DNA of 64,000 nucleotides, taken from assembly GCA_047495785.1 (NCBI GenBank), contig JBLDXI010000011.1, forward strand, positions 1,178,001 to 1,242,000. Direction: 5' to 3'. Position numbers and translations under genes: made by a program. The notes below the pieces were generated by a model. The model searched no databases, was not told where the DNA came from, and worked only from the letters and a program-made list of their open reading frames with translations. Origin of the DNA: Lepidodermella squamata (Eukaryota > Animalia > Gastrotricha). Positions 15,550 to 63,144 of this stretch are shown piece by piece; the first letter of the stretch is position 1; each line of letters begins with the position of its first letter.

Positions 15550-15552
15550 TTA

Positions 15553-15825: not shown

Positions 15826-15834
15826 TGTACAACA

Positions 15835-20270: not shown

Positions 20271-21537
20271 CTAGAACCTGCCTGCAGTCATTTCGCGGAA
20301 GAATGATGATACCTTAGAATAAATAGAATGGCTTTTGGAAATTAACAGCAGTCAAATCTACCTTTTCTCCGTCCCATTGAAATTCATCAGCGACCATAGT
20401 CTCAATATTTCGCATAATGACAATTCTGTCATTTGGCGATGGAAGTGATTGCGAACCTTTGTCTTGGTATTTACTCTCGAACCAAAAAGCTAGGCTTATT
20501 GTCGGCTGATCGCTTGCAGATTCAACATAATGCCACCAGCGAGGTGGAATGTAGAGAACATCGCCCGGGTTGATAATCGCTTCAAGCGCTTTCACGTTTG
20601 CGGCCAATGGGAATCTCGCGAAATCGGGATTCTCAAAATCTACCTGAGATTGGCGATCGCAAGGATGATAAACAGGATACGGGTAGAGATTCGCAAATTG
20701 TGACGGATCGAATAATAGAACACGCTTTGTGCCGCTTATCTGCGCAAGGAAATTGTTGAATTCATCATAGTGGGCAGGTGTTATGCTGGCTTTCTCTCCA
20801 ATGAAGAGAACATTAGCCGCCATATCCTTCCAAGTGTTACGTGTGCGCTGCTTCTCAACCCAATGCCAATCAAATTCAGCTATGTCTTGCTTCAATTTTG
20901 GCGAAGCGCCATTTTTGTAAGCTGCAACATCTTGAAGGTAAAGCCATTCCGGGTCAGTGTGACGGGTCTTCATCCGGTTGTAAAATTCGTCAAATGTCAC
21001 GTGAGCTTTTTCATGTGGTCGAACGAATGCACGCACGTTCTTAATTTTATCCTCGTTGTAATACATGAACGTCCTATTTGCGGATATACGCAACGAAAAC
21101 TTATCGCCGCTCAAGTTATCGCGCAAATATTCTAACGTCCATTTTTCTGCACTTCGAAAAATCTCCCCATCTGTTATCACCACTGGCGACTGACGTAAAA
21201 AAAAATAATAAAGAGCACATTATTGGAATAAATCTTACTTCATTTGATATCATGTAATTTGTGAACGTGTTTCTAACCGACAATCGTGGCACTGCTGTTG
21301 GTTTGAAATAATATTCGCGAAATGTCTTTTGTGTTGTGCAGCTGTTACGCTCTCCGGATTGACAGTCACCCTACTGGCAAAATATTAATTAACGCATGAA
21401 TTACCAGACTTACAGCCATTAGGTACCTCATTCGAACAGAACGCAGCTTCCAATGCCCTGTTACGTTGTGATGAAGAATATTCATCAAGCCTTTGCAACG
21501 AAAAAAGAACTAACGTGAATATCAGGATAGCAGTCAT
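20271..21537 (-). CDS. FIH/HIF1AN-like JmjC 2OG-Fe(II) oxygenase 1 with N-terminal signal peptide/anchor (exons 21537-21427, 21370-21239, 21189-20362, 20312-20271; alternative ATG at 21561)
   Basis: Motifs WTLEYL, TPAHYDE (HxD), GTKR, LYPYPVYHPCDRQSQVDF, PGDVLYIP, WWHYVES, MRNIE and terminal GRF are FIH-like. Exon 1 MTAILIFTLVLFSL joins in frame through 49-56 nt introns. Confidence 0.9.
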
Positions 21538-22188
21538 GTTCAAACTGCGATGAGTCCGCATTGTATTCGAGAAATCAACTCGATATGAAAGTAAAACGTA
21601 ACACTTATTCGATATACCTATCACATATGTTATATGCTACTAGAAAAGACGCGCGGTACACCGCGCGCCTCGTAACATGTACGCTGCAATGCTTCCATGC
21701 CAAGGAACTTAATAATAAAGCGGATTTGAAAATAACTTGAAACGAATCACATTAAAGCCAATGGATTGTTGATACTTGTAAAACACCGTTCAGATGACGG
21801 TTGTTAACTTATAAATGTCACTCACGTTCCCCATTCTTCATTTCACAACTCCAATCTGATATTCAATGATATACGACATACATCTAAGTTAAGTAAGTTA
21901 AGTTAACTCCATTCATAGATCTATAGATCCTTACTCGACGTACTCTGAATGTGATCTGAGTGAGATCTAATTTGAGATCAAAATATGTGACTTAGCAACC
22001 ATAGATCCGTACTCAATGTTGATGTTGTAGATTGACATAGATCTACATTGAGATTGAGTTAAATAGATCTACTTATTCTTGAGAATGAGGTAAGTTGAGG
22101 TTAAGCTCCAAGTTGATCTAACTTGAGATTAGACTTGTATGTTAGTTAGCATCTATATTTCCTTACTTCGGGATGTAATGTTCATATA

Positions 22189-26667: not shown

Positions 26668-28213
26668 TTAGTATTCCAATGGGAGATGAGCGTATCTGCC
26701 GATAGTCAGGTTACGGAAAAAATTGTTTATCTGAAATACATGATTAAAACAGCAATAGACGCTAATTCTCACAACATACCTTCGTTTCATCCCAATTAAA
26801 CGTGTGAGTTACGATCTCTTCCGCGCCACGCAACATTTTTACTTTCATGCGATCAGATAATGGATACTTGTTGTTATCAGCCAAGTTAGGGTTGTTGAAA
26901 GTAAACGTCACACTGATAGTAGGCTGATCAGCTCCTGACTCCACTTGATGCCACCAATACTCAGGAAGATATATCACCTCCCCCGGGCTGATAAATGCTT
27001 CATAAGCTTCAATCTTTGACAGCAAAGGAAATCTTTCGAAATCAGGATTCTCAAAGTCAACAGGAGACTGTCTGTCACATGGATGATACATCGGGAAGGC
27101 ATATATATTTCGGAATTGAGACGGTGGGAAGATCAAGAAGCGTTTTGTACCTTTCACCTGGGCGACGAATATTTCGAACTCGTCGTAGTGAGAAGGTGTA
27201 ATGCTGTCTTCATGAGCTATCAGAAGAAGATTCTGTTTGTACCCAGGCTCATAATTGTTGCGCTGTTGGTGCTTATTCACCCATTGCCAGTTAAATTTCT
27301 GGACATCTTCTTTGAGTTCTTCTAGGGTTTCGTTCACCAGTGGCTGCTGAATGTACATCCTTCTATCTGCCGTATGGCGTTTTTGAAATTCATCATAGAA
27401 TTCCTTCATTGTAATATGAATCCTCTCATAAGGCCGCTCGTAGTTGGCAACATTTTTCACATTTTTCTCAGCGAAATAAAGAAATCTATTGGTTTTCGAA
27501 ACAAATACTTGATACAGGCCCTTGTTGCTTTTGTCCCTGAGATATTCCAATGTCCAGTTCAGTGCATTATCAACGAGCTTGGTACCAGTTATGACTACCG
27601 GTTTCTGAAAATATACGGGACTTATAACAAGGACGACAATTTAAAATGTAGAGTTGTGGTAAAAATATATTTCATAATCGGGCAACACGTACAGGCATAA
27701 TAGACATAATCAGTATATCCTCATTACGAAAATTACGGCCTTGGAGTGATATTACGAAAAGTCCAAAAATCATTGAAGTTCCTCACGTTCTCAAGTCAAG
27801 AAAAAAATGAATCCCTAACAATGGTGCAGCGAATGACAATTGAAAAATCGTTTACCTGTTTCGATATCATTTCGTCAACTTGAGGATCGTCTGCTGACAT
27901 TTTCGGTATGCTTTTTGTTTTGAGGAAGTACTCGCGAAACTTTGGCCTATTGTCGTTCATTGTTGATGGTTCGACAGCTGGGGAGTTCGTCGGGCTCTGA
28001 AAAATACGATAATGGCCTTCTATAATGGCACTTGCCTGGAAATCCACGTCGTGGGTGTGAGACGCGATGCAAAGAACTTGACGATATTTTAATACGCAAA
28101 TGAAATGAAATCTCGCTCACCTGGGCATTTATTATTTGAATCAATCTGCAAAGGTCGCAAAGTGATATCAACAGGAAATAAAAGGCAAATTAATTATTTA
28201 CGCGACTATCCAT
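26668..28213 (-). CDS. FIH/HIF1AN-like JmjC oxygenase 2 (exons 28213-28121 [in-frame TAA at codon 8], 28035-27856, 27604-26780, 26730-26668); may instead start at ATG ~27960
   Basis: TPSHYDE, GTKR, HPCDRQSPVDF, WWHQVES and terminal GRY are intact; intron positions match gene 1; the 5' end is uncertain. Confidence 0.85.
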
Positions 28214-28674
28214 GCGATAACGAGGGAATTGACGTAAAGTGACATAGGTTAACTCCTAGAAATTTTTCAACTTGAGCAGGAAGTTTTTGAGATTCGCAAA
28301 ACTGCAAAAAAAAGAATTACAATGATGTGGCCATTTCAGCCAAGAGAAATGCGTACGCACAGCAAAAGCGGAGTGTTCAGGTTGCAGGTTTTTCCTCAAA
28401 GAAATATCACACGACAGACGACTCTGGTTGTGATGTCCGCTAACATAATTTAACTGCTTCAGCAACGACAAATAATAATACTTCAGATACTGTCGGAACT
28501 ATTTTTGTGGAAAATCAGGATGTTTATAAGCATATTTCAATTATTTTAAGATATGATTAAAATAGGAATACCAACTTTGTTCGGTAAGTCTGTTACAGAC
28601 TTCAAGACTTATGTTGCCCCGCGTTTTTGTAAAATTTCAATTCGACAAAGTGGAACTCGATTGAATATTAAATA

Positions 28675-29041: not shown

Positions 29042-29135
29042 AAAGTATCCGAGGTGTTGTCACTAGGAAACCGGCAGCTGCAACTACAGTCCTCGACTGC
29101 TACGTTGAAAACAGGAACTCGATATTAGAACCTAT

Positions 29136-32604: not shown

Positions 32605-33886
32605 TCATTTGCTCATCGGCAGCGATACGTATCTGCCCACTGTGAGGTCACGAAAGAATGTTGTAAGCTGAAAATTAAATGCGAACAGGAAATGAGAGCG
32701 ATATTGGATGAATAGAACTCACCTCGTTTTCATTAAAATTGAATACCTGCGTGAATATCTTCTCAACGTTGCGCATCAGGTCAAAGTTGTTTGGTTCAGT
32801 TGACAGAACTTTCTGACTTTCGGCCTTAATTTTCAAATGGTACTTAATACTAATAGACGGATTGTTGGAGCTCGATTCAATTTGGTGCCACCAGCGAGAT
32901 GGAATGAGGATAATATCGCCAGGATTTAGGACAGCTTCTGAAGCAATGACGCCTGCGGCTGACGGAAACTTTGTGAAGTCGGGTTTCTCCAGGTCAACTT
33001 GGGAGTACTTATCACATGGATGATAATAAGGATAGGAATATAAATTGCCGAACTGCGACGGCTCGAATAGTATTACTCGGCTTGTGCCGCTCACTTGCAA
33101 CAAGATGAGATACTCCTCCTCGTAACCAGTTACAAGCTTGCTTTTCTCTTCGCTGACCATCAAAAAGCTTGAATCTATTTCTACCTGATGGCTAGGGTCG
33201 ACATGTTTTGCTATCCATTCGGAGAACATTGGCTTAACAGCGTTTTGCAGGGCTGGCAGTTTTGCAGTGTTTTGCAGGAGAAAAATCGTATTTGAATCGA
33301 GATGTCTTTCCTCGAATGCATCGTGAAACTGAGCGAAACTCATTTCTACAGCCTTAACCGAACTTTTAAAATTCTTGACGTGCTTCTTCTTTGTTTCGCT
33401 GCATTCTAAGAAGCGCTTGTTCTCGGAAATTCTAATATCAAAGATTTCGTCTCCATATTCCTCGAGCATTTCGTCTAGGGTGAAATCGTGAGCATCTAAA
33501 CCGTTATCAGAAATCACAATAGGTTCCTGCTTTACATGGAATTTTACAATCGTTAAACAGTTGACCCAGAGACTAACGTTATTCAGTTTGAGCTTTTCCT
33601 CGGAAAGTTTGATTCTCGGAATTGGCTGTGTTTGGAAGTAGTATTGCTGAAATAGTTTGGATTTTGAGCAGCCATCTCCAGCAGTCGCATCACAGTAGTC
33701 CTGGAAACAAAGATGGATCATCTAGATCAGAGAGGCCAAATTTCAATATTTTTCTTACTTCTGTGCTGCTACAGGCTGCTCTGCTGAGCCTGAAGTTAAT
33801 TATTTTACGATTAGGCTGAATGTAGCTTTATCAACTCACACATGAGCAATGAAGATGAGAAAATGAAAAGATGACATAGGCTGCAT
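32605..33886 (-). CDS. FIH/HIF1AN-like JmjC paralog 3, predicted catalytically dead, with signal peptide (exons 33886-33840, 33789-33759, 33700-33578, 33526-32723, 32667-32605)
   Basis: LYSYPYYHPCDKYSQVD, PGDIILIP, WWHQIES, MRNVE and GRY are retained, but TPAHYDE is replaced by VTGYEE and GTKR by GTSR. The spliced N-terminus reads MQPMSSFHFLIFIAHVLSRAAC; all introns are 50-58 nt. Confidence 0.87.
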
Positions 33887-34320: not shown

Positions 34321-34701
34321 ATGAATTTAGCCCATTTTCTCTTCGCGGTTTTGGCTTGGGCAGTTACGATGGCTGTTCAACCGGGCGATGACATTGTGGC
34401 GTTCACAAGGGCACTGGATCTTTTCAAATCATTTGACTACGCAGCCGCCGTTGATGGATTTTTTGAAGCGCAACAAGTTGTCGATCAACTTAAAGAAGCT
34501 GGCTATAAGCCATGGCAGCGGGAGGAAGATATTGTGTTATACTTGGCACAGTCGATCGTTCATTCCACCAAAGACTATGCGAAAGCTGTTAAAATTATAG
34601 AGGACTATACAGGATTTCATACGTCCTATTTAGACCTTTTAGCTCGCTTCGCTAAACAGTATAGTTATGACGCCATCAAGGCGAATAAAACCGAATTGTA
34701 A
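34321..34701 (+). CDS. Small helical (TPR-like) protein with signal peptide and C-terminal KTEL ER-retrieval-like motif, 126 aa
   Basis: MNLAHFLFAVLAWAVTMA leader; TPR-like patterns (ALDLFKSFDYAAAVDGF, YLAQSIVHSTKDYAKAVKIIE); KTEL-stop immediately followed by AATAAA. Confidence 0.8.
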   Translation: MNLAHFLFAVLAWAVTMAVQPGDDIVAFTRALDLFKSFDYAAAVDGFFEAQQVVDQLKEAGYKPWQREEDIVLYLAQSIVHSTKDYAKAVKIIEDYTGFHTSYLDLLARFAKQYSYDAIKANKTEL

Positions 34702-36111: not shown

Positions 36112-37124
36112 TTAGAATTTTCGATTCAGCATTTTTGACTGCCAGGCAACCATGCCCGATTCGGACTGGAACCAGATGGTTAAATTCGAGCGCAACTGCT
36201 GGCCGTGGTCGAAACCCTTTTTCTCGGTGACGCGAATGTTCTCTGGGACGAAATTCGGTAGCGCGCCTTCTTTCTCGATCTCCTGCCACGTGTCCCACGC
36301 CTCGCGATCGCCGATGTTGTAGTTAGAAACCTCGGCCATTGCGAAATTATGAAGCGTACAGATGGCCAGCACGGCGTCTTCTGCCATTTCTGGGCTCAAC
36401 TCCATCACTTTCCGAAGTAGGCGGAATCTAGCTGATGCAATGCCGAATGCGTTTTCGACGACACGCCGACCGCGAGATAAACGATAATTAAAAGTTTGCT
36501 TATTAGCCGGCAAATTTCCGGATGTTTGTCCGGGATAGGGTGAAAGGAAGTTCCAGTCTAGCCCGAACGCCGCATCGCCAACAAAATAATGGTTCGCCTT
36601 CATATTGCCACCAGGTAGAGGAATAGACTCCGTTGGCGTGGTGTTGCTGCAATATTCCAGCAGGCCGCTATTCTTGAATACCCCGCCGTCACTGAAACGG
36701 CCGTGGGCACCGACATCGACCAGGCAGAAGCGATACTTGGCGTCAACCACCGCCATTAGCACAATCGAGTAAGTTCCCTAAAAAAATTAAAATTAAAAAT
36801 TAAAAAATCCAGAAAAATTGAAATTAAAAATTTACAAATTAATTTTGAGAATATTTTTTCAAATAAAATAAAAATAAATAAAAATAAAATAAATAAATAA
36901 ATAAATAAATAAATAACTAAATAAAAATTGCTACCAACCTTATAATTATAGTATTCGCTCCCAGATTTTGCCGGACGAACGATGACGCAGTGTTTTCCGT
37001 CTACCGCGCCGCAGCAGAACGGCAAATTCCAGTACTGGCCAAACTCGGCGGCGTTCTCTCGCCACGTTTCAGCGGTGGGAGTCGGCATGTAAATTGGCAT
37101 TAGGGCGGTTGCACAGCCGTACAC
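36112..37124 (-). pseudogene. Harbinger DDE transposase (HARBI1/DDE_Tnp_4-like), 5'-truncated; exons 37124-36939 and 36777-36112
   Basis: GAVDGKH, YYNYK|GTYSIVLMAVVDA, GRFSDGGVF, VGDAAF, FNYRLSRGRRVVENAFG; the N-terminal region is missing. Confidence 0.92.
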
Positions 37125-37125
37125 C

Positions 37126-37851: not shown

Positions 37852-39025
37852 TTGTGAATTGTTTGTAATTTTTTGTTGAATTTTGTCTTAAATTGTTGAA
37901 ATGCGTTGTAGTATATGGTGTTGTAATTTCCGCTGTTGTTGAGCCCAATAAAACTTTTCCGCTCTTCGTTAGATTCTTTTGTTTAAACTCTTCGGTTCGG
38001 ACGCACTTCGGACGGTAGTTTTGCGGGTCTCCGATCCGATGTTCATTGTTGTGCGTGCGCCCGCTGGGTCGGACGCGCTATTGTTCAAACTTCGGGCGCG
38101 CAGGCCGAAGTGCGCGCGTTTGTGAAAGAAAATCTGAACGTCGGGCAACTATTACGCTACTTCGGTCGCCTATTACGAAACTTCGGGCGCCGAAAACGTC
38201 GGACGCTCGTCGGACGCATTTGTGAAAGCACCATTAGATTTAGGTTTGACAGTTTCTTTGTTCTTTCTCATACAGTCCTACAATGCCCTCTAAAATCTAG
38301 TGTCTATTTTAAGTTTAAATGGATACGATATCTGAATTCAGCAGCAAATGTTGATGCGGTTTCTGCAAGACGGATGGGATATTCATAATAATCGTCATTC
38401 GCGACTTCGAATTCTTCGCATCGCGCCATTTTACCTGAGGAACAGTAGCAGGGGGCCGTGATACGATTTACGATCCTGGATAGTACAATACATATCGATT
38501 TCAAACTTAATGAACTAAATGAACTTTTCCACCGAAAATCACAAGAAGCATTTTCGTCACCAATTTCTCAAATTTTATCCAAATTTAACGAGGATTTCAG
38601 GAAGGTTTACAACAGACTAGGTCTATCGAACGGTGAAACCCGCTCCAAAAAATTCCTCATGGTTACGGAGCTATTAAAAAACTGCGAGGCAAAAAAATTA
38701 TCATCCGTACTTTATAAGGCTAGAGAGATTATCATGTTTGAGAAATTATCGCGAATGAAAAATTGGATGACATAGCAACAGAACAGGAGTTTCAAAGCCG
38801 CCACTGATTTTTTTACAAGTAATGAGCATCAAATCTTAGTTGAGCATAAAATAAACATTGGTATATATATAAGGATTGGTATATAAGAAATCGAACAATC
38901 AACTAATAATCAATAAATTACGCAAAATCACGCATTCGACGTTTCTATAGAAAAATCGAAATATTAAGGCATTACTGCACATTTACGATGCCACCGAGAC
39001 TCTAATAAAAAATAAAAAAATATGT

Positions 39026-39696: not shown

Positions 39697-39697
39697 A

Positions 39698-40058: not shown

Positions 40059-40312
40059 AAGTGAACGACGAGAAATTCAAATTTCGCGTTTTCCTGAATG
40101 TTTTTCACTGCAAATTAAATTTGTATTTGAAAACAAATTTAAAAGTGAACGACGAGAAATTCAAATTTCGCGTTTTCCTGAATGTTTTTCACTGCAAATT
40201 AAATTTGTATTTGAAAACAAATTTAAAAGTGAACGACGAGAAATTCAAATTTCGCGTTTTCCTGAATGTTTTTCACTGCAAATTAAATTTGTATTTGAAA
40301 ACAAATTTAAAT
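40059..40312. repeat. Perfect tandem repeat, 3 x 84 bp
   Basis: gtgaacgacgagaaattc... recurs at 40061, 40145 and 40229 with no visible mismatch. Confidence 0.97.
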
Positions 40313-43354: not shown

Positions 43355-43851
43355 ATCATTATAGGGCGACTTTGCAGTCACGTGAATAAGGTCAAAGTCC
43401 GTCTGTTTTTTTCTGGTCTTGGTCGCGCGGTCGCGCAGTCGTTGTGGTCGGGCGGTCGTGTAAAAAAATGCTCACTTAAAAATGAGAGAAAAAAAACGAT
43501 GCACCACCAGGAGTCGAACTAAGGATGTTGGAATAAAAAGCCATGTTTTTGATCCACTACGCCACCAATTCATGGCAATTAAGAGTTTCTATCAGTGGAT
43601 CCGATTAGCAACAATATGGGTGTAAATATTTCTTCAACTGGTGGCGTAGTGGATCAAAAACATGGCTTTTTATTCCAACATCCTTAGTTCGACTCCTGGT
43701 GGTGCATCGTTTTTTTTCTCTCATTTTTAAGTGAGCATTTTTTTACACGACCGCCCGACCACAACGACTGCGCGACCGCGCGACCAAGACCAGAAAAAAA
43801 TAGACGGACTTTGACCTTATTCACGTGACTGCAAAGTCGCCCTATAATGAT
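43355..43851. mobile_element. Palindromic element: 213-bp arms (43355-43567, 43639-43851), each containing a tRNA-like segment
   Basis: Arms are near-perfect reverse complements; TGGCGTAGTGG (A-box) ... GTTCGACTCC (B-box) ... GGTGCA followed by a T-run. Confidence 0.85.
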
Positions 43852-43861
43852 GCATAATTAT

Positions 43862-46364
43862 CCTGTATCGTTACATGCGCCGATTTTTTTTGCGCATCAT
43901 AGATTGCGCAATGTAACATGCGCATTACCCATTTCCTATTTTTTAAATTGAGCATTTCGCAAATGCGGAATACGAAGTTGCGCAAATTTTTTTGTTTGCG
44001 AATTTGCTCAATTCTAAAATACGGAAATGGGTAATGCGCATCGTTACATTGCGCAATCTATGATGCGCAAAAAAAATCGAGCGCATGTAACGATAGGATG
44101 ATTAGTAATCCGTTTTTATTGTTAATTCGTTCTTCGTTTATAGTAAAAATGAGCGTGAAAAATGTTTAGATTGTTCCGATTTGAAGGTTAAAGAAAAAAG
44201 TTTAAAGAAACATGTTGATCACAATTTGAATTGAAAGCGAAAGGTGTTCAAGTTCTGACGATGAGATGGACTGGGTTGGGCTCAGTCGTCCAGATCGGCG
44301 AGTAGGCGAGCGCAGTAGCGGACGTAGTCTGCTTGATTGACGTTGCCAGCAACGAAGCGGTCGTGCAGGATCTCCACCCTGCGTTGCAAGCGCTCATACT
44401 TGCGATTCAGACGCACCGTGTCGGCTGCAGACGCAACTTGCTCCCGGCGAGCTCGAGCCGCCGCTTCCTCCTTGCCGAATTGCTCGACAACCTCCCAGAT
44501 GTTGGGGTGAGGTTTTCCCAGGCACTTGTTCAATCGATAGTGCCATCCTACAAAACAGAATTGAAAGTGAGAAACAACTACTCGCGTCACTCTTACCTTC
44601 AGCGTGGTTGTTGGTCCTGACGCTGCGCTCCCAAACATTCCAGTGAGCTGGAGGATTGTCACGCAGCCATGTTTGTTCGACATAGGCGAAATAGCGGTCG
44701 AGGACAGCGGGCGCATCGTTTCGGATGGTCTCGATATGCGCGGCGACCAGGTTGACAGGAAGGAAGGCGGTTGCAGTCGTCTCCCGAACGATCGTGCGGA
44801 CGTTGTTGGCGTTCTCGCGGTAGGCGACCTGATGGAGAAAGTGATTTGGATCAAATGTAAAAAAATGAAAATTTACATGATTACATACCTTCAATCCCAT
44901 TTCCACGGTCACAAATCGGTAGTGACATTGGGTGAAATGAAAGAAACACCCGCAAAAGTCAAACGGCTGTCCGTTGCCGAACTCATCCTGAAGAGCAGGG
45001 ATCAAACCGGTTTCAAAGTCTGCCGTGGCAGATTGCGGCTGGAATCGTAGATCGCGATCGATAGCAACGTCTTTCAGTGACCTGAAGAACCTTCCGTAAA
45101 GGCGGCGTGTCTTGCGAGTGAGTAGGCCGTAAACCAGCGGCTGGATGAGATCAGGCTCCGTTTCAGCGTGCAACGTGAAGATCTGCATGAACTGAGGCGG
45201 AGAAGACTTGAACGTTCCGTCCATATAGACGCGTTCCGCGTTGGTGAGCAAGTTGAAGTCTTCGGGTGAAGCGAACGCAGCAAAACAGCCATCATTGGTC
45301 ACCTCGGCTGACAGTAAGAACGGCCTATCGATCGAAGTTCTTATGAATCTGTCGTAAAAAGAAAAATATAAGAATTCCATTGGATAATCTAATAAAATCG
45401 CTTACCTTCGAAAACGTTCATCATCCTCGTTTTCGATCAGCATTTCGACGAACTGCTCGGCGTTGTCGGGGTTTGCCGGTAAATGAAGGCGTCGCTGGCG
45501 GTACAACGCTCCAGAGGCAGATGCGAAACCCGGTAGCAGCATAGCTGCTTCTGGGTCCACATCATTCAACTAGAAAGATGGTGAAGTTAGTTATTTTTTA
45601 CAACGACGAAATTTGGCAATACCTCTGTCAGGTAGCGTTCGTAAATTCGGGGTGCAGGTTCCCGGGTAGTGCCAGCCGCCATTTTCATGAGACTTTGAGC
45701 ATGTTCCTTCGCGAGCCGCTGCTCATTGGGTGGGTGGCTGTGATCTCGAGCCAGCGTCCACAGACCATCGTGTTCCACAACCCGACCTTGACAATGGCTG
45801 CGCAAGCAACGGCCGTTTTCGCGGTACCCATAGCCGTTTACCATGATTTTCGGGCGCCCTGAAAGGAAAGAAAATTAAACAATAATTCGAAACAGGATCC
45901 AGGTTGAGAGAACCTTTAGTTGTAGTTGACATTACTGCCTCCCCAACATCGGCATCCATCTCTTCATCTTCCATAGCATCCATTTCCATTTCATCAGCTT
46001 CCGCCATTGTTGAATGTAAAATGAGTGAGATATAGTTATAGAAATTGATGTTATCGATGAATCTTCAAGCCTTTTCGACCAGCTTAAATACTGGAATCCA
46101 CTGCCAATTAAGATAGTCGTGTCAAATTTATTGGTGCGCAATTGTTTCTCCGCTCAACTATAATTTGCGAAACTGGGTTATGCGTAATTGCTGTAATGCG
46201 CAATGAACGATGCGCATCATAATAATTGCGTAACTGGATAAGCCCATATTCCAAAATTATAAAAAACTAAAGCTGAAAAAACTAAATCCCATCTGAGGAA
46301 TGCGCTAATACCTGAGCGCAAATACCCCATGCGCAAAAAAAATCGGCGCATGTTACATACGACC
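43862..46364. mobile_element. Mutator-like (MULE) transposon, apparently autonomous
   Basis: 9-bp direct repeat CATAATTAT at 43853-43861 and 46365-46373; TIR core acatgcgccgattttttttgcgcat; transposase gene inside. Confidence 0.88.
44282..46007 (-). CDS. FLYWCH-MULE transposase, six exons
   Basis: KG|RPKIMVNGYGY...C..C...HSH (FLYWCH-like), YMDGTFK, VYGLL, ADFETGL, GCFFHFTQ, RTNNHAE|GWH, HPNIW; five ~50-60 nt introns join all pieces in frame. Confidence 0.9.
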
Positions 46365-46626: not shown

Positions 46627-48093
46627 TCATATGTAACATCCGCGTAAATTCTGAAACATCATAACAGGCTGGTGGTTGTTCATTCCGTTAAAGTATTCAT
46701 AGCCGATGAAGCGCCAGCATTCACTCATCATTTGATAGCGTTTCGGCCCATACATTCTATTCTGGTTGAACTGAACGGTATCTGAACCAAGGGGCACGCC
46801 TAAAAGCAGCAATCCCCCGGGTTTTACGATACAACTTATTTTAGCCATTTCCATAAGATCACCATCCGGATTCAACGGATCACTGTACCTGCCTAGACCG
46901 CTGTGCTCTAGGCTTGAAAAACTGACGGCGAAGTCGTAGTGGCCGAAAACTTTCCCCGAGCTGATCATCTCCTCGAATTCTTTAGCGTGAATGTAAGACA
47001 TGTAAGGATGCTTCGGTGGGAATATCCCGCTAAGATCGAGATAGTCAACAGTGGTCACGTGGCTGCCTGTGACTTTCAAAATTTCGTGCTCGACCCACGG
47101 GTAGTAAGACCCTATGACAACGCTGCGTTTGTTCATAAAGTAATCAGGGTACTTTTGGAAAAAATGACGCATCTTGCCATGGGCGTCTACTGTATAAGTG
47201 TATTTCATGGGCCTTGCTGTTGGCGAGGATAAAACTTTTGTTCCCGACGATTCCGTAATATTGACAAGGTATCGCCACTCTGCCTCGCAGTCTGATGTAT
47301 CCGCCGCTTTGTCCGGGGTGTATTCCTCGATAATCTTATCGTTATTCTCGGCAGTAAACCACGGTTTGCTGTGTTCGATGAACCTGTCCCTCTCGCCGCC
47401 GTAATAAACTTGTTTGAGCTCGCCAAACTTAACCGGCCGCTCGTATTGTCTGATACTTCTGCACAGGGGCTTGAGAACATTCAACCGCCAATAGTCGGTA
47501 AAACTTGACAAATTGTACGCAGAAAGACCTCGGTTTTTCAAATAACGAAATTCCTTGAAATCGCCGTTGGATTTCTGTATCCCTGCATAGCTCTCAGCTA
47601 GAATCGCCTCGTTGTAATCATTTTTTATGGCGAGAAATGGGAAGCCAGCCTTGTATTCTTGCCATGGCATGAACCAGCCAGCTAGTTTCGCCTTCATCTC
47701 CTCGGTCATGGGCTCCAACGCCTCGATTTTATCAATCAGCGGGCAATTAACTGCCGCAGCCGCTTCCTTGTCAAAGTTGTCTAAACATCGCGCGCAGAAA
47801 CCAGGCAAACGAGGCGAAGAGCTGTCTCGCACTACGACTGTATCTAAGGATCTGAATCAGACGTGTAACGTTCATGTTAAACTTTGCTTTCAATAAAAAT
47901 ACCCTTGAAAATTCTTGATGACTTCAGGTGAAGGAACGGGTGTTATTACTGGCCTGATGGATTGAGGCGGTGTTTCAGTGCTAAAAAGGAAGTTGAGCGA
48001 AATTATGGCCACGAAGGTTATCAATAGGGCTACGGCTGCTCGTATGTGACCGCGAGATATGCGGCCTCTAATATATTCATGAAAAATCTTCAT
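46627..48093 (-). CDS. DUF268-family SAM-dependent methyltransferase-like type II membrane protein (exons 48093-47903, 47851-46627)
   Basis: TM AAVALLITFVAIISLNFLF; 51-nt intron; VVIGSYYPWVE, YDFAVSFSSLEHSGLGRYSDPLNPDGDL, KPGGLLLLGVPLGSD and RMYGPKR are typical DUF268 motifs. Confidence 0.88.
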
Positions 48094-48963: not shown

Positions 48964-51900
48964 TCACCTGGTGTTATCTACATCGAATGCTAAATGATCG
49001 AGTCGATCATAATCTTCAAAGTAGCAGCTCTCCGTATGTTTGTGCAGAAAGCGCCGAGTGGGCCTCCGCGAATAGTACGACGCCATTTCTGAGAGTCCGC
49101 TGCGACTGATGATCAAATAGTCCATGCGCGTCAGCAGCAGCCAAACGCGGTACGTCGCAGCTACAGCTTGCCATTTTTGGTCGTAAGACCACGAGTTCCA
49201 CTTGCCATGGCCATGATTCAAATAATCAATGTGTTCAACTGGCTCGAGCGACGTGTAAGCCTTGATTCTGTGCCAGCGCCACAAATCCTTCACCAAAGCC
49301 GAGGCCACGGCTACGTTGTCGCTTGTAACGTAGACAAGAGCTCGCTGCAGGTCGTAGGCCTTCAGGGTTCGGAGTAATTCCTTCTTAAAGCAGTCTGATT
49401 GCTTGCTGGAAACACGAGTAGATCCGTCAATCACATTAGTTCTTATGTGAATGCCTATGAGAATTGAAAAGTTTAGGCTTAAGCATTACATATTCCTAAA
49501 GGAAATAGCAATCGTGAACAAATATAAAAGGGTATCATCTCCAGGTCGGCCCGAAAATTAAAATTTAGTTCGTAGTTTTGTCAATATTGAGAGGCTTTGA
49601 AGCGTAATTTGTTGGGAATCAACAAAAAATTCCTAGCTTCGCTCGTTTCATGGTTGAAATTGCCAGTTCATAGACAACACTGTAACAGATGGGAAACTAA
49701 CGATCTTTCCATAGTGAATTAATTCGAGCTGAATTTGCTAAGAGTGCTGCACGCGATCACTTTTTATCAGCAGTTTATGCTGCGGATTCAGCCGAGTCTG
49801 CCATTGGCTGTGAATCAAACGAATCTTCCACCGCTGAATTCCGAGCTGAAGGAGAAGAAGCCTCGGCTAAATGAGGACTTCCGCGAGCTTGCTCCGCTGG
49901 ACTTCGTCGATCCAGAGGGTGACAGCGATGACGAGGGTGATGGTTTGGATGACTAGCGAGGAGTAATTAAAGCGAATAGTTGAGTGACTGCCAAGATATG
50001 AGAAATTCCCAACTCTCAACTATTTAGCCGCACTCTTTCAAATTCAGCACGAATAAATTCACAAGGGAAAGATCATTATTACATAGTTTCCTATATTTTA
50101 CAAAGTTGTCTATGCCCCAGTCATTTTGGCAAACACAGGTTCCAATATCGCACCCTGTTGGCAACTAATCCCTTGTGGGTCTAGAAAAAAGCCCCGAAAG
50201 TCTGCTAACCTATTTTCTGCGTCGATTCATTTAGGCGACTGCGAAAAGCATTGAACCATGTTTGCTGAACGTAAGCCTCAAGCTTCGGCTGGGGCTTCCC
50301 AAATAAAATTCTCAACGCAGCAGAAACAATTTGCAAATAATTGAATGTATTCAATCCGTAAACGTCGGCGATATCGCCGAAAAGATCGCGTTTAGAAAGT
50401 GCGACTTGAACGGCCTGCATTGTATTAGTCAAAGCTTTAACCCCAAGCAACGAATCATTACGCAGCCTGGTTGTGTACCAATCGACGATTGCGTCCTTGA
50501 AATCTGCATCGTAGTTCATGTTGTGCCTATTGTGAAAATTGGGCGAGGATGCTAGGCAATGCTCGTCGATTTTTCTCGCCAAGCGATCGTCGGCGGTTGG
50601 ATACCAATCAGAATTGACAGCGAAGAACTGCTCAATCGGCAACGGCGCGGTTGATTCGATAAGGAAGACTGAGTCGGTCAGAATAGCTGCGTAAAACATT
50701 GCGATAATGCCGCGTAGCCGGTCGCCCCAACCTGCACAGCCTCCCCAACCTCCTGCCGCGCAAAAGTATACGAGCACCTTGGGGCGACATATCTCGTTAC
50801 CGCAGGCTATTGAAGGCATTTTCGTCCTGACTCGGGTGAAATACGTTTGTCTGATGTGATCTATTCAAGTACAGAAGAAAACAAATGACGTTGCTCTTAC
50901 AAAATTTCAAAAATTGCCTCGTGATTTTCAGGCCCTCGAAGAAAAGTCCCTCATATGCCCTAAGTGACCCTACATTTTCAGGGGACATACAGGTGACCCT
51001 TTAGATTAACGAAACCGTCTGCAATTTTTCGGCTTTTGTTAAAGCTTTACTATTTACTATTCTACTATTTTTCTTTATTATATCGCACATGAAAGATGGA
51101 ATTTTCTCTCTATAGGTTTAATTCCATAATATATTATCTCTCCTTTGAGCATTGGTTGTGCGCCACCTTGACCCGGTGCTCAATTTCGTTGAGCATCTTT
51201 GAGCATTCCGTTAAGCACTGTTGAGCACTCCGTTGAGCAGCGTTGTGCACATTGAGCACAAAATGAGACATTTCTTTAGGCACGTTGTGCTTCTTTGAGC
51301 AGCCTTCGAGCACTCGTTGTGCGGCTCTTGAGCATCGCGTTCAGCGCCAGATTAAGCACCAGTCGTCAATGAATTAAAAAAAATCAGTCGCGGGCAGGAA
51401 TTGAACCAGTGATCTTTGCTCTCAAGCCCGCAATCAAATCCATTGCGCCACTGGCTCCTCATAAATGGATACTATCAAAATCGACTTATCAATAATTCCA
51501 TTTGTTAACAATTTTGCAACTTAGGCAGTTTTTTTGTAATTGCAACCGAGCCATTTGCAAATGAAAAAATATAATTGGGGAAAAATATTAAAAAAAAAAA
51601 AAACCAGTCAGGGGCGGGAATCGAACCAGTGATCACTGCCCTCACACTCAATTTTGTCATCTTTGGAGTGCTCAATGATAACCTGTTATCCTGTTGCGCA
51701 CAAGTTGAGCACTTTCGATATGTTCCGGCTGACGTTGAGCATAATTTGCGCACAAATTGAGCACCCATTGAGCAATCATTGAGCATTTTGAGCACAAGTT
51801 GTGCAATTGAGCAAAAGTGCTCAAAGGAGAGATATTATCAGCTAAATTTCCTGAAAAAAATTGCAAAATTGAAATAGTTGCGCAACTTCCGGGCAGAGCC

Positions 51901-54430: not shown

Positions 54431-54969
54431 TGCACCTATTGCCCATCGTCACCCCTAGAAACGTACAAATGAGTACATATTAAACCACCATCATATGTGA
54501 CCACGTTTTATGCGGGGAAAATGTCCTTCCCTCCTCCTATACGGTAATTCGAACCGTCATTTTTTATTCAAAATACGAGTTTTTTCCTCAATGCGTCATG
54601 ATCAATAAAAAATCAGAAGATTTATTGGAAAAAATCGTTGAAAGCATCAAGTCAAGATATGTAGAATAAATATAATATGTAACTGATACGCGGCATGAGA
54701 AGCGCAATTATAATCAAGATGCAAAATGTTAGTTCAACCCCAGTTTTTTCTGTTTCCGGTGCAATGTTATGCGCGCAATCCGCGATATGCCACTTGTCTG
54801 TAGAAAATTCTCCGAATTATTGATATAAGCTGAAATCGTCCTAATTATATATTGTAAACGAAGGTAAGAAGACAGAACATTTCATTTGAGAGCATTATTT
54901 TCCCACACTGACTTTTAAAGCGCCCTCAGTTTCTCTGCTTACAACTGACCGCTTTTTTTGACTGAATCG

Positions 54970-57900
54970 ATGATGGCCTGGTTGAATATTTTGAAAACCG
55001 ATGAAGACAAACGAGCAACGGCTCTGCAGTACGGGCTCACTACTGCCTTGCTGATTTCAGTATTGCCGCGATTCGGATTAGCAGGAACGGGTGTGCCAGC
55101 CGATGGCTATAAATACTACTGTGAGTCGATGATGGTGGCTCAAGCTTGTTCGCAATACTTTAAATCAGCAAAGGCTGCTTGGCCAGATTTGACCCGAGTG
55201 GATAAATTTCATGATTTCCGCAGGATCCTGCTAGTTTTGCACTACAACTACCCAAACTACGCGTCAGCTGCCAAAGTTCTATCATTATATCGAGATGTGT
55301 TCGCTAAAATTGTATTTTGTGGCCCGACAGCTAATTTTTGGCCGCATCAAGAGACAAAATTAGAAACCGCTGTTTCGGAGAAGGTTGCGCCTTTCGTTAA
55401 CTACGGCTTTCCCAAGAGAGGTGAGCTCATAGCAACGTATGCATGCCTGCCACGAGCGATCGAGGCTGTCGGTGACGACTTCGATGGCGCCCTAGTCATG
55501 TCAGATGACTTGCTAGTCAACTACTGGAACTTGAAAGACGCTTACAACAAATCTTTGAAGAAGCTTTGGCTGCTGAAACCTGACCGGGATCACCCGTTTG
55601 ATGTAGACACGGTGAGTTCGCAATTTTTACCTTCTTCTGGGCTGGATGTCGCAATGAAAATTTTCATCTTAAGCTATTTACTAGATATTTCGCATTAAAT
55701 TGAAATACCCGAATTTCAGCCAGATTCGGTATAAAAACTTCCAAAACTTTGACAACCATTGCTCCATTAATTTCCCCGCTAAAGGGCCTCTCGATTTCTT
55801 GAAAGCCGATTTACTACAATTCGATTGTTTAGCCGCAGTTCGATTGAATATGATTTGTCGGCATTTTCGGATCATTGACGTTCGGAGTTCGGAGTTGACC
55901 ATTCATCGTGGGCATTCCAATTATTCGTTTTGCGTTACATGCTACTGAAGCTGCCAACTTCGTGTTCTAGCATTTTCAAGTCAGATTTCTGTCCAACCCG
56001 TCATGACTATATTAGCCTTGCTATAATTATCTACACTGGAAAAAATACGGTCCGCATAATTGATCATTACAAGCAGTTCTGTAACATACCCGAATTCATA
56101 CCCCATTTTATTTGCAGGGTTTTTTCTGTCATAAAATGAGCAGCAACAATTCCGTCGATTGTGTGAACGACGATTGGCGACAGAATTGGCGTTGGCAAAT
56201 TTATAATCGCAATCAGACCACAAGTTTCTTCGACGATCTCGACAAATTGATCGCTGGAGAGGCATCGCCAAACAGCAATGTTAATGTCTCGCCTAATTAC
56301 TGGCGCGAAGTGAAGACAAATTTGACAAATGCGACCGGCGGAGAGCGTCGCATGTTAGGCCTTGCGTCTGGAGACGTGTTCTACATGCCAAAATCGTATT
56401 TTCACAACGCAATGCCACTCTTGAGTCTCCTGGGAAAGTGAGTCAAATCTGCCATGAGCACTATATGAATTCATTCGGACCATAGTTTTTCGTCAGCAAT
56501 ATCCTTCTTTTCACAGCAAAATCCTTTTTCTCACAGCAATTTTTTTTTTCGCGAGGAACATCTTTTATGTGCAGCAAATCCCGTTTTATTTCAGGAGAAA
56601 AGAAAAAAAATTGCAAGTTGAAATTGAAATTAACCACGCGATTCAGCGTCGCGTGTTTATTTAGCATCATCACATGTCAGTAGCATTGTCAGTAAATTAT
56701 TGCTAAATTATTCGGAAAAAATGTCAGCTTTTTCTGAAATGAACATTTCCAAATTTTCCACGTCACCCTATTTCCCCAGGGCCATGTAGTGATTGTTGCA
56801 AAAAAAACATGGTATGTTGGCTTCCGCCCGGCACCGCGATGGCCGACGGGCCTGATGACGTAAGGGACAGATTCCATTTGATGGACCTCAATATTGATAT
56901 TACGGCTCACTGCGATTGCTGTAAGGGCCTCCTCCCCGCCCCAGTAGCCTAGTTCCGACAGGCGTAGAACTGCAAATAAAGTTAATTAAGTTTTGCACAC
57001 ATGAAACGCGATGCAAATTTATTTACCAAATTCCAAATAATCTTCCAAGCCGTAGGGCGTATTCTCCCTGTCACCCGGGTGAATCCCGGCATCACCAATT
57101 CAGCGTTGTCGGTGAGCCAGTCTACCGCCTCAGCCCTCAGCAATGCATGGTCGTCCTCCGAACCGTGGAGGAGTAGTGCCATCGCACGGAAGGCACAGTT
57201 CCCGTCACCCAGAACGTCGTGCACGGCGAATCGGTCGTATCGGTCACCGTCACGAGGGCAACCGTCACCAGCAGGCGGAGACTTCATAAAAGGTCACCTC
57301 ACCACCTTCTTTGAGCTGAACGACTTTGGCGCGCTTCTTGCACACTTCGTACCCCTGCTTGGAATAGAAAGCGCAGCGAAAGATGAGTTGCCTGGATTGA
57401 TCCGAGGCAACGTAGACGGAACCGTCGGGGCGAAGAAGTGGCTGGTCTGCTTTGATGCGCGTCACCAAGTCTTCCCATGGCTGGGCTTCGTACTGTTTGC
57501 TTTTGCAATATACGACGTTGTTTCCGCGAATCGGCGCTGGTTCCAACGAGCTACCATCTGAAGACGAGCAACCGTAGATGGCGTTGATACTCGAACTTCC
57601 TTCATTTCAAGTTAAAAGTTATTTTAAATGAATATACGACCAACTGAAAGTCATTTGGTCTTGACTGGAAGATCTGGAAGCGTTGCGCAATGAAACGCGC
57701 GATCTACTTTTTTAATTTGTTTTTTTTCCACGTGCCCATACTTTTCAACCTTTTTAAGGTGTTGTTACGACTTAACACGCGACGCTGAATCGCGTGGTGA
57801 ATTTCAATTTCAACTTGCAATTTTTTTCTTTTCTCCTGAAATAAAACGGGATTTGCTGCAAATAAAAGATGTTCCTCGCGAAAAAAAATTGCTGTGAGAA

Positions 57901-58280
57901 AAAGGATTTTGCTGTGAAAAGAAGGAATTTGCTGACGGTTAAAGTATAATTCATTCATAACTAAAATTCACTGCAGGCATGAAGTTTTCATGGAGATAGG
58001 TCTTATAACGGCCCTGCGTGTATTGGCGCCCCATGCTGACATTCAAGACTTGAGCTGGGCAGCGCACGACTGGGGCCAGGGCATCATTCGCAGCCATCCT
58101 CTGGTTGAAGTTTACAATACAACCCTGGAGTTCATTCATCCGGTTAAATTCGGCGACAGGCATCGCTTTAATCGCCTGCTACGGCTAGATTTAGCCAGTT
58201 GGGGGACAACTTGCACTTTTTGCAATGTTAACAAACTGGGTACGGCATTTGCTGCTATGCAAAAGCAAATCCCACCGTAG
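54970..58280 (+). CDS. DUF288/STELLO-like putative glycosyltransferase-associated protein (exons 54970-55611, 56118-56437, 57977-58280)
   Basis: Hydrophobic N-terminal segment; ILLVLHYNY, LYRDVFAKIVFCGP, GALVMSDDLLVNYWNL, GDVFYMP, VFMEI and FIHPVKF resemble the C-terminal region of DUF288 proteins; splice phases are consistent. Confidence 0.78.
56477..57947. mobile_element. Internally deleted MULE-like element carrying an OTU protease, inserted in intron 2 of the DUF288-like gene
   Basis: ~165-bp TIRs (56491-56657 / 57774-57937); 9-bp direct repeat AATTCATTC at 56468-56476 and 57948-57956. Confidence 0.9.
56768..57546 (-). pseudogene. Zn-finger (WRKY/FLYWCH-like) fragment fused to an OTU cysteine protease domain, with frameshifts and one intron
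   Basis: FRCAFYSK..CKKRAKVV fragment, then VLGDGNCAFRAMA...HALLR, LGYWGGEEAL and NNHY (OTU Cys, WG and His motifs) across two frameshifts and a ~57-nt intron. Confidence 0.8.
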
Positions 58281-59545: not shown

Positions 59546-61269
59546 GATCGTTGGTAGATACTCTATAGCGAGATGGCGAGATTAAAGGCTAAATTTGGGA
59601 GAACCAACAATACCTAACGAGCTGTGAATGTGATGGCTAGATTGGACCCACGACACTGATATAGAATGCGAATATTGTTTTCGATAAGACAAGCGAGAAA
59701 AATGTAATTATCGCTCAAACAAGCCTTGAAGCCAATCCTAAGCGGCCGAGTGTCCTGGCAAAATGCGTATTCCGAAGCGGAATAAAAACAAAGTCAAATC
59801 AGGTCACAAGTATACAGGAAAATGTTTGAGAATATTGAGTACTTTAATCCGCCACAATACTTACTCAAAATTAGCCTTTAGCGACTGAGCGCGCGCAGAC
59901 GTCCACCATTGGTATTGAGAATATTTAATATCCTCAAATACTTTCCTATAGGCTTGTGACCTGATTTGACTTTGTTTTTATTCCGCTTCAGAAGACGCAT
60001 TTAGCCAGGACACTCGGCCGCATAGGATTGGCTCAACAATGTATTCGCTTCAGCACTACAACAATCAACTGCATGTACTCATTTGTTTAGAAAAGGGTGA
60101 CGATGCGTGGTTGTCACCTTTTTTCTCCCCTTTGCCCTCCTCTGTTCAAGATAGCATGCCCTAATTCGTGAACTGCAGCTCGCGGACTATTTTCTAGAAT
60201 TTTTCTAGCCAACAATTGAACATTTTTGCCACAGGCGATCTTAACACCTTACTTCGGGCCGATTCCTGTGCGTTAACGCCCCTTGTCCTTTAAGCGCGCG
60301 TTGTGTTCAAGTTGCCAATCACGCACACACAATGTGTACGCACGGCCATTGGTCGATACACAACGGGATTTATGAGCGGGATTCGTTCACCGTTCATGAT
60401 TAAGTTGATATTTTACATTATCAGGCACCCGCCCAGTGATATTAGCCCCCCTATTCTTATCCTGCGTGATGAACCGCGTGCTATCCACGTGAACTGGGGT
60501 TTGGGGCTGTAAAGTTTCTCTTTTGAGAAAATTCACGTTGCAGGCAGGGTGCGAAGTACAGGGTTGCTGGGGTGTCGCGACTGGCGCCATGACTAAGATC
60601 CATGATTAAGATCATTTCAGTTGCCAACAGAGATGTTACCAATAACGGTAAATTTGATATTATTTTTCTTGGTTTCGAGGTTTTTCAAATCATTCCTGAT
60701 GGCGAATCGTCAACAATTGCGCCTGCTAAAGGCTAAAGCTCGCTTCGCTAGAGAAAATTTGAGCGTTTGTAAGAGGATTTGGGACCTGTTTTTTTACCAA
60801 AAAATTCAGAAAAATTTCTCGCTTTGCTCGACCCAACGATTTAAATTGACAATATTGTCCACCGATGCAAAGCATAGATACTAGTTGTGCGTGCGAGCGA
60901 GCGCAATTTTTTTGCAGCTCTATATTAGGAACACGCCAGCTTGAAAATCATACTTCGCACACTGGTTGCAGGGCTGGGATTCAAACCCAGGACCTCTGTG
61001 CATCCAGTCATATTCCAGCTTATTATCCAGCTTATAACCAATAAGCCACGAGACTGGTCACATTCTGCGTTATTAAAAAGTTGTTTTAGCGGAGCACGCG
61101 ACCTTTTTTATAAGCGACCCCACAAAGCAAAGTTTTAGCTCGAAAAGGTGGCTCTATCGAATTGATTGGAGCTGTTATTCACTGAGGTCACCGGTTTAGC
61201 TCCCAGCAAAACTTCCATTTTTTTCGGACACTCATTCTTCATAGACGTTATTCATCTGCATTAATTCTT

Positions 61270-63144
61270 ATGCTGTTTCACAAAGTTTCAACTTCCGCCA
61301 TTGCTATCATCGCTTTGGCATGGCAAGCAATCTCGCGGGCTCACTGGCTTAACGGTTCATACACAAGGCCTAGATGTTCGGAGCAGCTTTTACCGAAAGT
61401 GAAAGATGATCCATGCAGCAACTTCTACAATTGGGGCGTTGACTTGGAACTCATGCTGCCCATCCCGCCAACCGATCAAGGCCGCGATGAACTGGCCAGC
61501 TTCATCCTGCCGTCGTTATCGCTGTTCTGGCCGGCTGATAACCTCAAACTCATGTTCATCACCGATGGTGAACATACGAATGTCGATGCTTTCAAGCAGA
61601 GCTTGAAAGATGTGCTTGTGCTGCCTAACGTTTCACTGAGCTGCAAAGCTGGTTATCGGGTGCTGTTGAATTACCCGAATGTCACGCTCAAGCGGGGATG
61701 GGACCGCCAGCAGTGGCTCATGTTCTGGGCTGATAACTTCACAACTTCGGAATACGTCGGCTTCCTGGACAGCGATGCTGTGTTCGTGACTCGGGTGCAT
61801 AGGTACGATTTGTTCGTCGATGACCGGCCTATCATCAGGGCGGTTTTCGGGAAGCCGTACGATCCAACCTGGTGGCCGCAAACTTCCAGGGTGACCCAAG
61901 CAGCGATTGGAAAGCCAGGTGGGTATTTCCACCCTTCATACTAGAACGTTTTTTCCGTTTCGTCATTCGAAATTTTGGCGCGGAACTCAAAGCTATTTTC
62001 TAAAGCCCACATTATAGAAAGTGAAACCAGCCCACTTACAAATACACGAGTGCAGAACTTCCCGGTAACCAACATTTATTTTCATGAAGCGCGCAATTGT
62101 TCATAGCACATTACGCGCTAGATTTAGTTGCTTTCTATTCTGGCTATTAGACAGAAATCCGTTGTGGTCGAAATCGAGCTATCATCGCCCAGTACAGGCG
62201 AAGTGCGCGATTCTTGAGCTTCAAAACTGAATTCTGATCTGAATACTAACTTCTGACAACTTTTTAGGACTGACTGTTGTCAGTGCAGTAAAGAGGGACG
62301 TTAGGGACCTTCATGTGAGTAATTTAGAATCTGTAATTCGAATGCTGAAAACATCTGATAATCTGGATAATCAGGGTGCTCGAAGATATTTTTTGTGATA
62401 GGATTGTCAAGTTTCGCACTCGTGTAAAAATAGTTAAGGTAAAACCCTGATAGACATATGTTCGATGAAATTTATCGGACAGTTCTTGGTCCTCGGTCGT
62501 TCGCAAACTAAAGATTGCTTTATTGAACAGAGCCCATGAACTGCATGTCGTACTTTCCTGTCATCTTTAAAACTACACACTTGAAACCCATGCGTGAACA
62601 TATTCGGAAGCAGTTCAACACAACAACGTTCGACGAAGCCTTCCTTCTGATTGCATCGCACAAAATCTACTCCCAGTTCACCATTATGTGCGCATACCTA
62701 TGGTACTATCACCGGGATGCTTACTTCTGGACTATCCGAGAGCGCGAGCCTGGTTGGAAGGGCCCATTCGCGCCTGGCCAGGCGAAGACTCCAGCCGAGG
62801 TAGGCCTTACTCAATCTCTGTTCGAGATACAACGCCCTTCGCTGGCTATTCATTGGAACTATGAGGCATTCAAAGACGAGCGGAATGCAATGACATCATT
62901 ACTAAGAACAGGTGTTTGCTATTCAATGAGTGAAACTGAGAAGCTGAGGACGAAGTTGTGCGACAATCAGCCCAGTCGATGGGACTCGCTTAATACTTAC
63001 GAGTGGACCTTTGAAAGCTATACCTTCATTTGGAACAACACGCTGACATTGGCAGCCCATCGCGAGCGGCTTCAAAGACTTGATCAGTGTCCGCATAGAT
63101 GGAATTTTAGGCCAATGAGAAATCGTTTTCAAAGCGTGCAATAG
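61270..63144 (+). CDS. GT-A-like (DxD) glycosyltransferase-like protein B (exons 61270-61918, 62531-63144)
   Basis: Signal/anchor SAIAIIALAW; GWDRQQWLMFWADNFTTSEYVGFLDSD; EPMNCMSYFPVI; YSQFTIMC; intact paralog of 40978-42779. Confidence 0.85.

Follow-up and report, generated by a model that had tools for sequence, protein, structure and literature searches.

A neighbourhood of putative secretory-pathway modifying enzymes in the gastrotrich Lepidodermella squamata, with a candidate fucosyltransferase beside a DUF268 protein

To our knowledge animals are generally thought to be without biosynthetic gene clusters. A 64-kb stretch of the genome of the gastrotrich Lepidodermella squamata (contig JBLDXI010000011.1 of assembly GCA_047495785.1, positions 1,178,001 to 1,242,000; referred to here as the window and numbered from its first base) raises the question of whether enzymes from different families that lie side by side in an animal work together, or have merely come to rest in the same place. 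The region in question, 20.3-63.1 kb, carries nine genes besides those of transposable elements (TEs). Three are JmjC genes of the FIH type, one encodes a small protein ending in KTEL, two encode GT-A-like glycosyltransferases (GTs), and the other three are a DUF268 gene, a fucosyltransferase-like (FucT-like) gene and a DUF288-like gene. On balance we think it probable that this is a real and long-retained neighbourhood of secretory enzymes, divided between one block of hydroxylase genes and one for glycan decoration, and that the FucT-like and DUF268 genes form its best-supported working unit.

The gene content was established from a listing of open reading frames (ORFs) and a Pfam scan of the window. 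On this basis genes made up of small exons may be missed. The queries for spliced genes were their individual exons. Between the nine genes the only recognisable content, by the same reading, is transposons and repeats, and none of the twenty-odd other ORFs of at least 90 amino acids in 20.3-63.1 kb matched a Pfam family. The base composition of the window, which is eukaryotic DNA, is even, with a GC content of 0.39-0.49. In silico, a signal or anchor is present in seven of the genes and plausible for the DUF288-like gene, while none was found for the FucT-like gene. A preliminary description of this DNA had held that, one tiny orphan apart, every gene here not belonging to a TE encodes a predicted modifier of the secretory pathway, and this is borne out by the ORF and Pfam content of the region. 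Its statement that the proteins come from unrelated folds is true in part, as three of the nine genes share the GT-A fold. What is left is four enzyme folds and the small KTEL protein, so that at least three non-homologous enzyme families are adjacent. The genes look functional from their sequences: the frames are intact, the allelic differences in the DUF268 gene are synonymous and the sole frameshift does not recur in a separate assembly of reads.

The fucosyltransferase-like gene (48964-50819, two coding exons), which resembles the GT37/GT23/GT65 superfamily, lies directly upstream of the DUF268 gene on the same, minus, strand, with about 870 bp separating it from the DUF268 start codon. 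In Pfam it matches XG_FTase with an E-value of 0.03 and 13.3 bits, as against a cut-off of 23.4, and neither exon has a sequence match in the PDB. Its neighbours according to a protein language model are clusters of XG_FTase, O-FucT and FUT8 (0.94-0.96); with one of the XG_FTase clusters, at 0.96, it has 187 atlas features in common. Two motifs are visible, a G-x-G-D/N-R-L at the N-terminus and an H-x-R (motif I) that is formed across the splice junction. Taking the sub-threshold XG_FTase match, the language-model neighbours and the H-x-R motif together, it would seem likely that the protein is a fucosyltransferase.

The DUF268 gene (46627-48093, minus strand) is assigned with much higher scores, matching PF03269 with 131.9 bits against a gathering score of 25. 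A type II anchor exon and its splice site were identified upstream of the long exon (46627-47832), giving a type II membrane-anchored protein. The AlphaFold2 model of the single long exon has a predicted local distance difference test (pLDDT) score of approximately 90 over residues 176-400, which adopt the fold of a class I S-adenosylmethionine (SAM)-dependent methyltransferase. Foldseek returned at least 500 matches with E-values of 0.001 or lower; nearly all of the 50 matches listed are SAM methyltransferases, with NodS, UbiG and MycE among the named ones and a best E-value of 3.4e-8. No significant match was found when PDB sequences were searched with the DUF268 profile. Residues 1-175 of the ORF belong to no family and are modelled with low confidence, though they are conserved in the best database match, a EukProt transcriptome entry that is 35% identical over the full length. 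All six of the six allelic single-nucleotide polymorphisms (SNPs) seen in the exon in read run X2 are synonymous changes at third positions.

The SNPs are concentrated in a patch at 46981-47116, six within 136 bp in run X2, and four of these are also present in read run X1. At 47541 one X1 contig (depth 7) is without 7 bases of the DUF268 exon, which would shift the frame; this is not seen in X2, and an error, an allele and a chimeric contig are all conceivable explanations. Elsewhere, a 627-residue protein (P0087) joins DUF268 to Methyltransf_21/22 domains of the FkbM type, with two methyltransferase modules in a single chain.

The pairing of the two genes has counterparts in other organisms. 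In protein P0063 an N-terminal domain with a weak match to NodZ, of the fucosyltransferase superfamily, is fused to a C-terminal DUF268 domain, so that the two domains are arranged in the same sequence as the neighbouring genes of the window. The P0063 gene (locus L007) is found amid genes for GDP-mannose dehydratase/epimerase, aminotransferase, methyltransferase and GT proteins, which make up a deoxyhexose-glycan cluster. This cluster, of the bacterial polysaccharide type, shares the combination of fucosyltransferase-superfamily and DUF268 domains with the window, though there in one polypeptide. It differs in being compact, intron-less and GC-rich and in having genes for nucleotide-sugar synthesis, whereas there are no sugar-nucleotide genes in the window. 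On a 206-kb protist contig 1.8 kb separates a DUF268 gene from one that encodes a GT10+GT25 protein; genes for GT17 and for methyltransferases are also close by. Among the genes studied here it is only the FucT-like/DUF268 pair that finds outside support for joint working, from domain fusion and from adjacency elsewhere.

If the two proteins do act together, the FucT-like enzyme would transfer a sugar of the fucose type, and O-methylation of that sugar or a neighbouring one would be the task of the DUF268 protein, as suggested by the fold, the adjacency of the genes and the fusion elsewhere. We know of no enzyme that has been identified as O-methylating animal glycans. The adjacency seen here, the fusion and the closeness to GT10 in the protist together nominate DUF268 as a candidate for the O-methylation of animal glycans, and of fucose in particular. 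That the pair constitutes the module for methylated fucose that has long been sought in animals is an idea that we hold only tentatively. In Caenorhabditis elegans the methyltransferase that modifies fucose has yet to be identified (PMC7614267). The pair seen here puts DUF268 forward as a concrete candidate for this enzyme.

The remaining members of what we regard as the glycan block are three GT-A-type genes. GT-A-like gene 1 (40978-42779, minus strand) has two coding exons and encodes an N-terminal membrane anchor and a DTD motif; GT-A-like gene 2 (61270-63144, plus strand), also of two exons, encodes a signal or anchor and a DSD motif. They are paralogues, 38-42% identical, and have the same phase-1 intron. 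Gene 2 reaches 24.9 bits with the Pfam DUF6492 profile, for which the cut-off is 22.9; gene 1 has no match and their homologues match weakly. An exhaustive profile search gave 401 representative relatives, typically of 400-430 amino acids, and the aspartates D181 and D183 are invariant across 39 sequences of the family. The fold was predicted for a 49%-identical homologue (P0241), not for a joined protein from the window; this model, with a pLDDT of 87.5, matches the GT-A enzymes TarP, the ABO transferases and TarS with E-values of about 4e-6. No significant match was obtained on searching PDB sequences with the family profile. In gene 1 the frame is broken by a 1-base gap in a run of T at approximately 42244. 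A contig of read run X2 has one extra base at this point, so the break is either an assembly error or an allele, and the X2 reads carry an unbroken gene; since this independent contig carries the missing base we rejected the possibility that gene 1 is a pseudogene. A perfect tandem repeat, three copies of an 84-bp unit, is situated just downstream of it at 40059-40311.

The third gene, of the STELLO/DUF288 type (54958-58280, plus strand), has three exons, the last intron of which holds a 1.45-kb element. It scores 27.6 bits against the Pfam STELLO profile (PF03385), for which the cut-off is 27.8, and the match covers only profile positions 180-307. Its top atlas neighbour is a STELLO cluster at 0.88, and all the other named families among its neighbours are GT-A. 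A word-based search for homologues of the DUF288-like exon gave no match. With the STELLO (DUF288) and DUF6492 families the window has in common GT-A-type proteins that bear a D-x-D motif and are anchored in the membrane; its three genes differ in being short and stand-alone, and the DUF288-like gene falls just below the Pfam cut-off. Nine long relatives of the GT-A-like proteins from protists and metagenomes (P0251, P0255, P0257, P0259, P0261, P0271, P0272, P0297 and P0363; loci L005 and L012), of 636-931 amino acids, have an N-terminal half and a segment like positions 1-112 of the STELLO profile ahead of the DUF6492-like module. As these chains carry both modules, the two GT families occur elsewhere within a single protein. 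No relation was detected by hhalign or BLAST between the DUF288-like protein and either the GT-A-like family profile or the STELLO-type halves of the long fusions, and the fusions therefore cannot serve, in the manner of a Rosetta stone, to connect GT-A-like gene 2 with the DUF288-like gene. Together with the FucT-like and DUF268 genes, the two DUF6492-like genes and the STELLO-like gene would make up a second block (41-63 kb) of Golgi-type glycan decorators.

The first block (20-35 kb) contains the FIH-type genes, all on the minus strand. FIH-like gene 1 (20314-21537; main exon 20314-21183, Cupin_8 E-value 3.8e-43) has three coding exons with GT/AG junctions, the first of which encodes a signal-like hydrophobic N-terminus, and the protein is 44% identical to animal FIH. 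In FIH-like gene 2 (26762-28245; main exon 26762-27550, Cupin_8 E-value 8.1e-35) a small 5' exon with a donor site supplies the hydrophobic signal. FIH-like gene 3 (32675-33886; main exon 32675-33721, Cupin_8 E-value 2.9e-24) has an intact frame and likewise a signal-like 5' exon. Overall, one or two small 5' exons precede the main exon of each gene, with canonical GT/AG sites and a predicted signal-like hydrophobic N-terminus. The three proteins are 40-44% identical to FIH (HIF1AN) from molluscs, echinoderms, cnidarians and vertebrates, and their best 120 database matches are all FIH proteins, with 36-44% identity. One of the matches, from sturgeon (P0121), was considered as a possible contaminant or relative and rejected, the sequence being that of a 26-kb FIH gene belonging to the fish itself.

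The catalytic residues were judged from an alignment of the trio with five FIH proteins. The residues that, going by human FIH, we take to be the Fe(II) triad (H-x-D...H) and the Lys that binds 2-oxoglutarate (2OG) are kept in copies 1 and 2. In copy 3 the His of the H-x-D motif is replaced by Gly and the Asp by Glu, and both the Lys and the Thr that presumably bind 2OG are gone. From this alignment, copies 1 and 2 look active while copy 3 is probably catalytically dead. Copies 1 and 2 are 45% identical to one another and copy 3 is 31-35% identical to either. In a maximum-likelihood tree the trio stands apart from all other FIH sequences, including that from a choanoflagellate, with 99/95 support and on long branches, though its position may be subject to long-branch effects. 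The identity of 31-45% within the trio, together with the separate, long-branched clade, indicates that these are old, fast-evolving, lineage-specific duplicates.

Canonical FIH is a single-copy, cytosolic protein. The window genes share with it 40-44% identity across the whole catalytic domain and, in copies 1 and 2, the triad and 2OG-binding Lys. They differ in being three tandem copies, in their predicted signal exons and long branches, and in that one is without catalytic residues; going by the 5' exons read in silico, none of the three appears to be a cytosolic protein lacking a signal peptide. The block would thus represent an old tandem trio of FIH-type asparaginyl hydroxylases that gained signal-peptide exons, and its likely role would be to hydroxylate client proteins in the lumen of the endoplasmic reticulum (ER). 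If the trio is indeed routed to the secretory pathway, as appears to be the case, an enzyme of oxygen sensing would here have been put to an unusual second use. The same block includes the gene for the small secreted or ER-resident protein (34321-34701, plus strand), which is 126 amino acids long with a hydrophobic N-terminal signal and a C-terminal KTEL and matched no Pfam family. It is arranged head-to-head with FIH-like gene 3, with about 430 bp to the first exon of the latter, and would be transcribed divergently from the dead copy.

Gene sets of this kind are known from C. elegans, where the glyco-gene clusters C13A2.1-12, K06H6.1-6 and T15D6.1-12 combine mixed GT families with putative methyltransferases and DUF268 (Paschinger et al, 2023; PMC7614267). 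As in the window, these are invertebrate clusters of putative type II Golgi enzymes from several GT families with putative methyltransferases and DUF268, several members of a family are found in one cluster, and joint function is unproven. The window is different in adding signal-bearing FIH-type genes and a KTEL protein, in the identity of its GT families (DUF6492-like, STELLO-like and GT37-like), and in that kilobases of DNA with transposons separate its genes. Nematodes retain Golgi enzyme genes of mixed families next to one another, as this invertebrate apparently does. A measure of how readily this might occur by chance can be had from C. elegans. The worm has roughly 20,000 genes in total. 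About 700 of its genes are candidates for the Golgi type (PMC7614267). Assuming random gene order and about 3.5% of Golgi-type genes, which is the C. elegans figure and was not measured in this genome, six independent families in a row would be expected genome-wide on the order of 1e-3, or about once per thousand genomes. Our verdict is that the glyco-gene neighbourhood is real, non-random and of a known kind, with its joint function unproven. It probably originated when expanded glyco-gene families duplicated locally and their members were retained for a long time, and not as one cluster selected for a pathway.

Several observations weigh against the two-block neighbourhood with a FucT-like/DUF268 unit that we favour. 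The fucosyltransferase assignment is below the Pfam threshold. The similarity of the FucT-like protein to the corresponding half of P0063 is not significant (E = 0.12), so that the argument from fusion is valid at the level of the superfamily only, and the P0063 contig, with a GC content of 0.59 and overlapping genes, has a prokaryotic look and is remote from this animal. Read run X1, which is possibly RNA although its kind was guessed, gave, for the DUF268 exon and a MULE transposon, contigs that are short, of low depth and in part chimeric and do not demonstrate transcription. The division into two blocks is itself a reading of a gap of approximately 6 kb that carries a Harbinger transposon and serves as a putative boundary.

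The strongest rival is that there is no functional coupling at all. A transposon-rich, recombination-tolerant region would have gathered expanded glyco-genes through duplication and drift, and their mixture would be incidental. At least four kinds of transposon are indeed found among the genes, and a survey of linkage in other organisms is in keeping with this view. Within 10 kb of the GT-A-like homologues a homologue of the FIH, DUF268, FucT-like or DUF288-like genes was present at 0 of 36 loci (4 from ENA and 32 from JGI, the latter totalling 150 kb, with most contigs short and no close relative's genome among them), and the neighbours scanned were unrelated genes. No conserved linkage was seen for this family at these loci. 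DUF268 forms a plain tandem triple beside thrombospondin-repeat genes in Lingula, and in Tribonema its neighbours are unrelated genes. Across the 36 GT-A-like loci and five stand-alone DUF268 loci no conserved multi-family cluster was found, except for the association of DUF268 with fucosyltransferase-type proteins. The microsynteny check put forward in the preliminary description therefore has a divided outcome, with no conserved linkage for the GT-A-like family and a DUF268/fucosyltransferase-type association that recurs. It is this recurrence in unrelated organisms, once as a fusion, that tells against the absence of coupling. The paralogues, moreover, are ancient and under purifying selection and are not recent, fast-evolving copies, and the head-to-head arrangement of FIH-like gene 3 and the KTEL gene suggests common regulation. 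The alternative raised at the outset, of a TE-rich, fast-evolving region that collects expanded families, is partly right, in that the families are expanded; the age of the paralogues (31-45% identity) does not agree with recent copying. We regard the absence of any coupling as rather unlikely, albeit deserving of serious consideration.

A second rival would make the whole region a true single-pathway cluster, in which the FIH-like enzymes would introduce hydroxyl groups into a secreted substrate, for which the Cys/Thr-rich protein encoded nearby is a candidate, the transferases would then build and cap a glycan on it, and selection, acting through joint inheritance or joint regulation, would keep the genes linked. 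All nine of the non-TE genes being secretory modifiers with four enzyme folds between them would fit such a cluster, as would the fact that all nine look intact and constrained, and the age of the paralogues means that the arrangement has lasted. Opposed to this are the 36 GT-A-like loci of other organisms, which are without the other window families, and the DUF268 genes of Lingula and Tribonema, which have no such neighbours. The genes are on mixed strands with transposon-filled gaps of several kilobases, and a Harbinger element separates the hydroxylases from the glycan genes; proximity is the sole link between the hydroxylase block (20-35 kb) and the glycan block (41-63 kb). Neither do we know of any glycosylation that begins at an FIH-type hydroxylation. 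What survives of the earlier proposal of a biosynthetic-type cluster is that non-homologous secretory enzymes are clustered and that their genes look functional, whereas a conserved linkage of the GT-A-like genes was not found. A single selected pathway appears improbable to us. Its fullest form, in which the Cys/Thr-rich protein would be hydroxylated, glycosylated, fucosylated and O-methylated along one ER-to-Golgi route, seems very improbable, though if true it would mean that an animal has a biosynthetic gene cluster devoted to a novel type of protein modification.

That the block was acquired ready-made, as a glycosylation island from a giant virus, protist or bacterium, might be suggested by the nearest database relatives of the DUF268 and GT-A-like proteins, which are mostly protist or unlabelled metagenome sequences, and by language-model neighbours of the FucT-like protein from haptophytes, plants and one Nucleocytoviricota cluster, yet it is scarcely credible given that spliceosomal introns with GT/AG ends are present in all the genes, the GC content varies little over the window (0.39-0.49), the JmjC genes encode FIH of the animal type and the best GT-A-like homologues are on contigs with animal-type Cys-loop receptor genes. 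More generally, the metagenome contigs bearing the nearest GT-A-like homologues are either animal-looking, with such receptor genes, or protist. A giant-virus origin was rejected after viral contigs had been scanned for relatives of the GT-A-like alignment and of the DUF268 protein; neither scan, each able to detect close relatives only, returned one.

The TEs between the genes are of several types. A remnant of a Harbinger-type transposase, in two ORFs, lies at 36112-37124 on the minus strand (DDE_Tnp_4, E-value 4.4e-23). A MULE-type transposase remnant of two overlapping ORFs is found at 44282-45380, also on the minus strand (MULE, E-value 4.2e-9), and next to it at 43350-43950 is a high-copy repeat with a word depth of 2200-2900 in run X2, compared with about 50-85 in its flanks. 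The element in the DUF288-like intron (56491-57937) has 167-bp terminal inverted repeats that are 96% identical by self-BLAST, and its ORF has an OTU-protease-like motif and a weak match to Peptidase_C65. The segments 15327-15916 and 37990-38388 have a repeat in common, 85% identical, as well as a fragment like the RNase H of retrotransposons, and are probably remnants of long terminal repeat (LTR) elements.

The gene for the Cys/Thr/Ser-rich secreted protein is present as three ORF copies at the left of the window, at 1406-2155 (minus strand), 8142-8891 and 13310-14059 (both plus strand). The protein has a weak match to New_glue (E-value 0.0013). Two of the copies are on the arms of an inverted duplication (703-4967/5330-9594), one on each arm; the arms are 4.27 kb long, 99.9% identical and about 360 bp apart, and the duplication could be a true palindrome or an assembly artefact. 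The region around the third copy, 13224-14265, is 90% identical.

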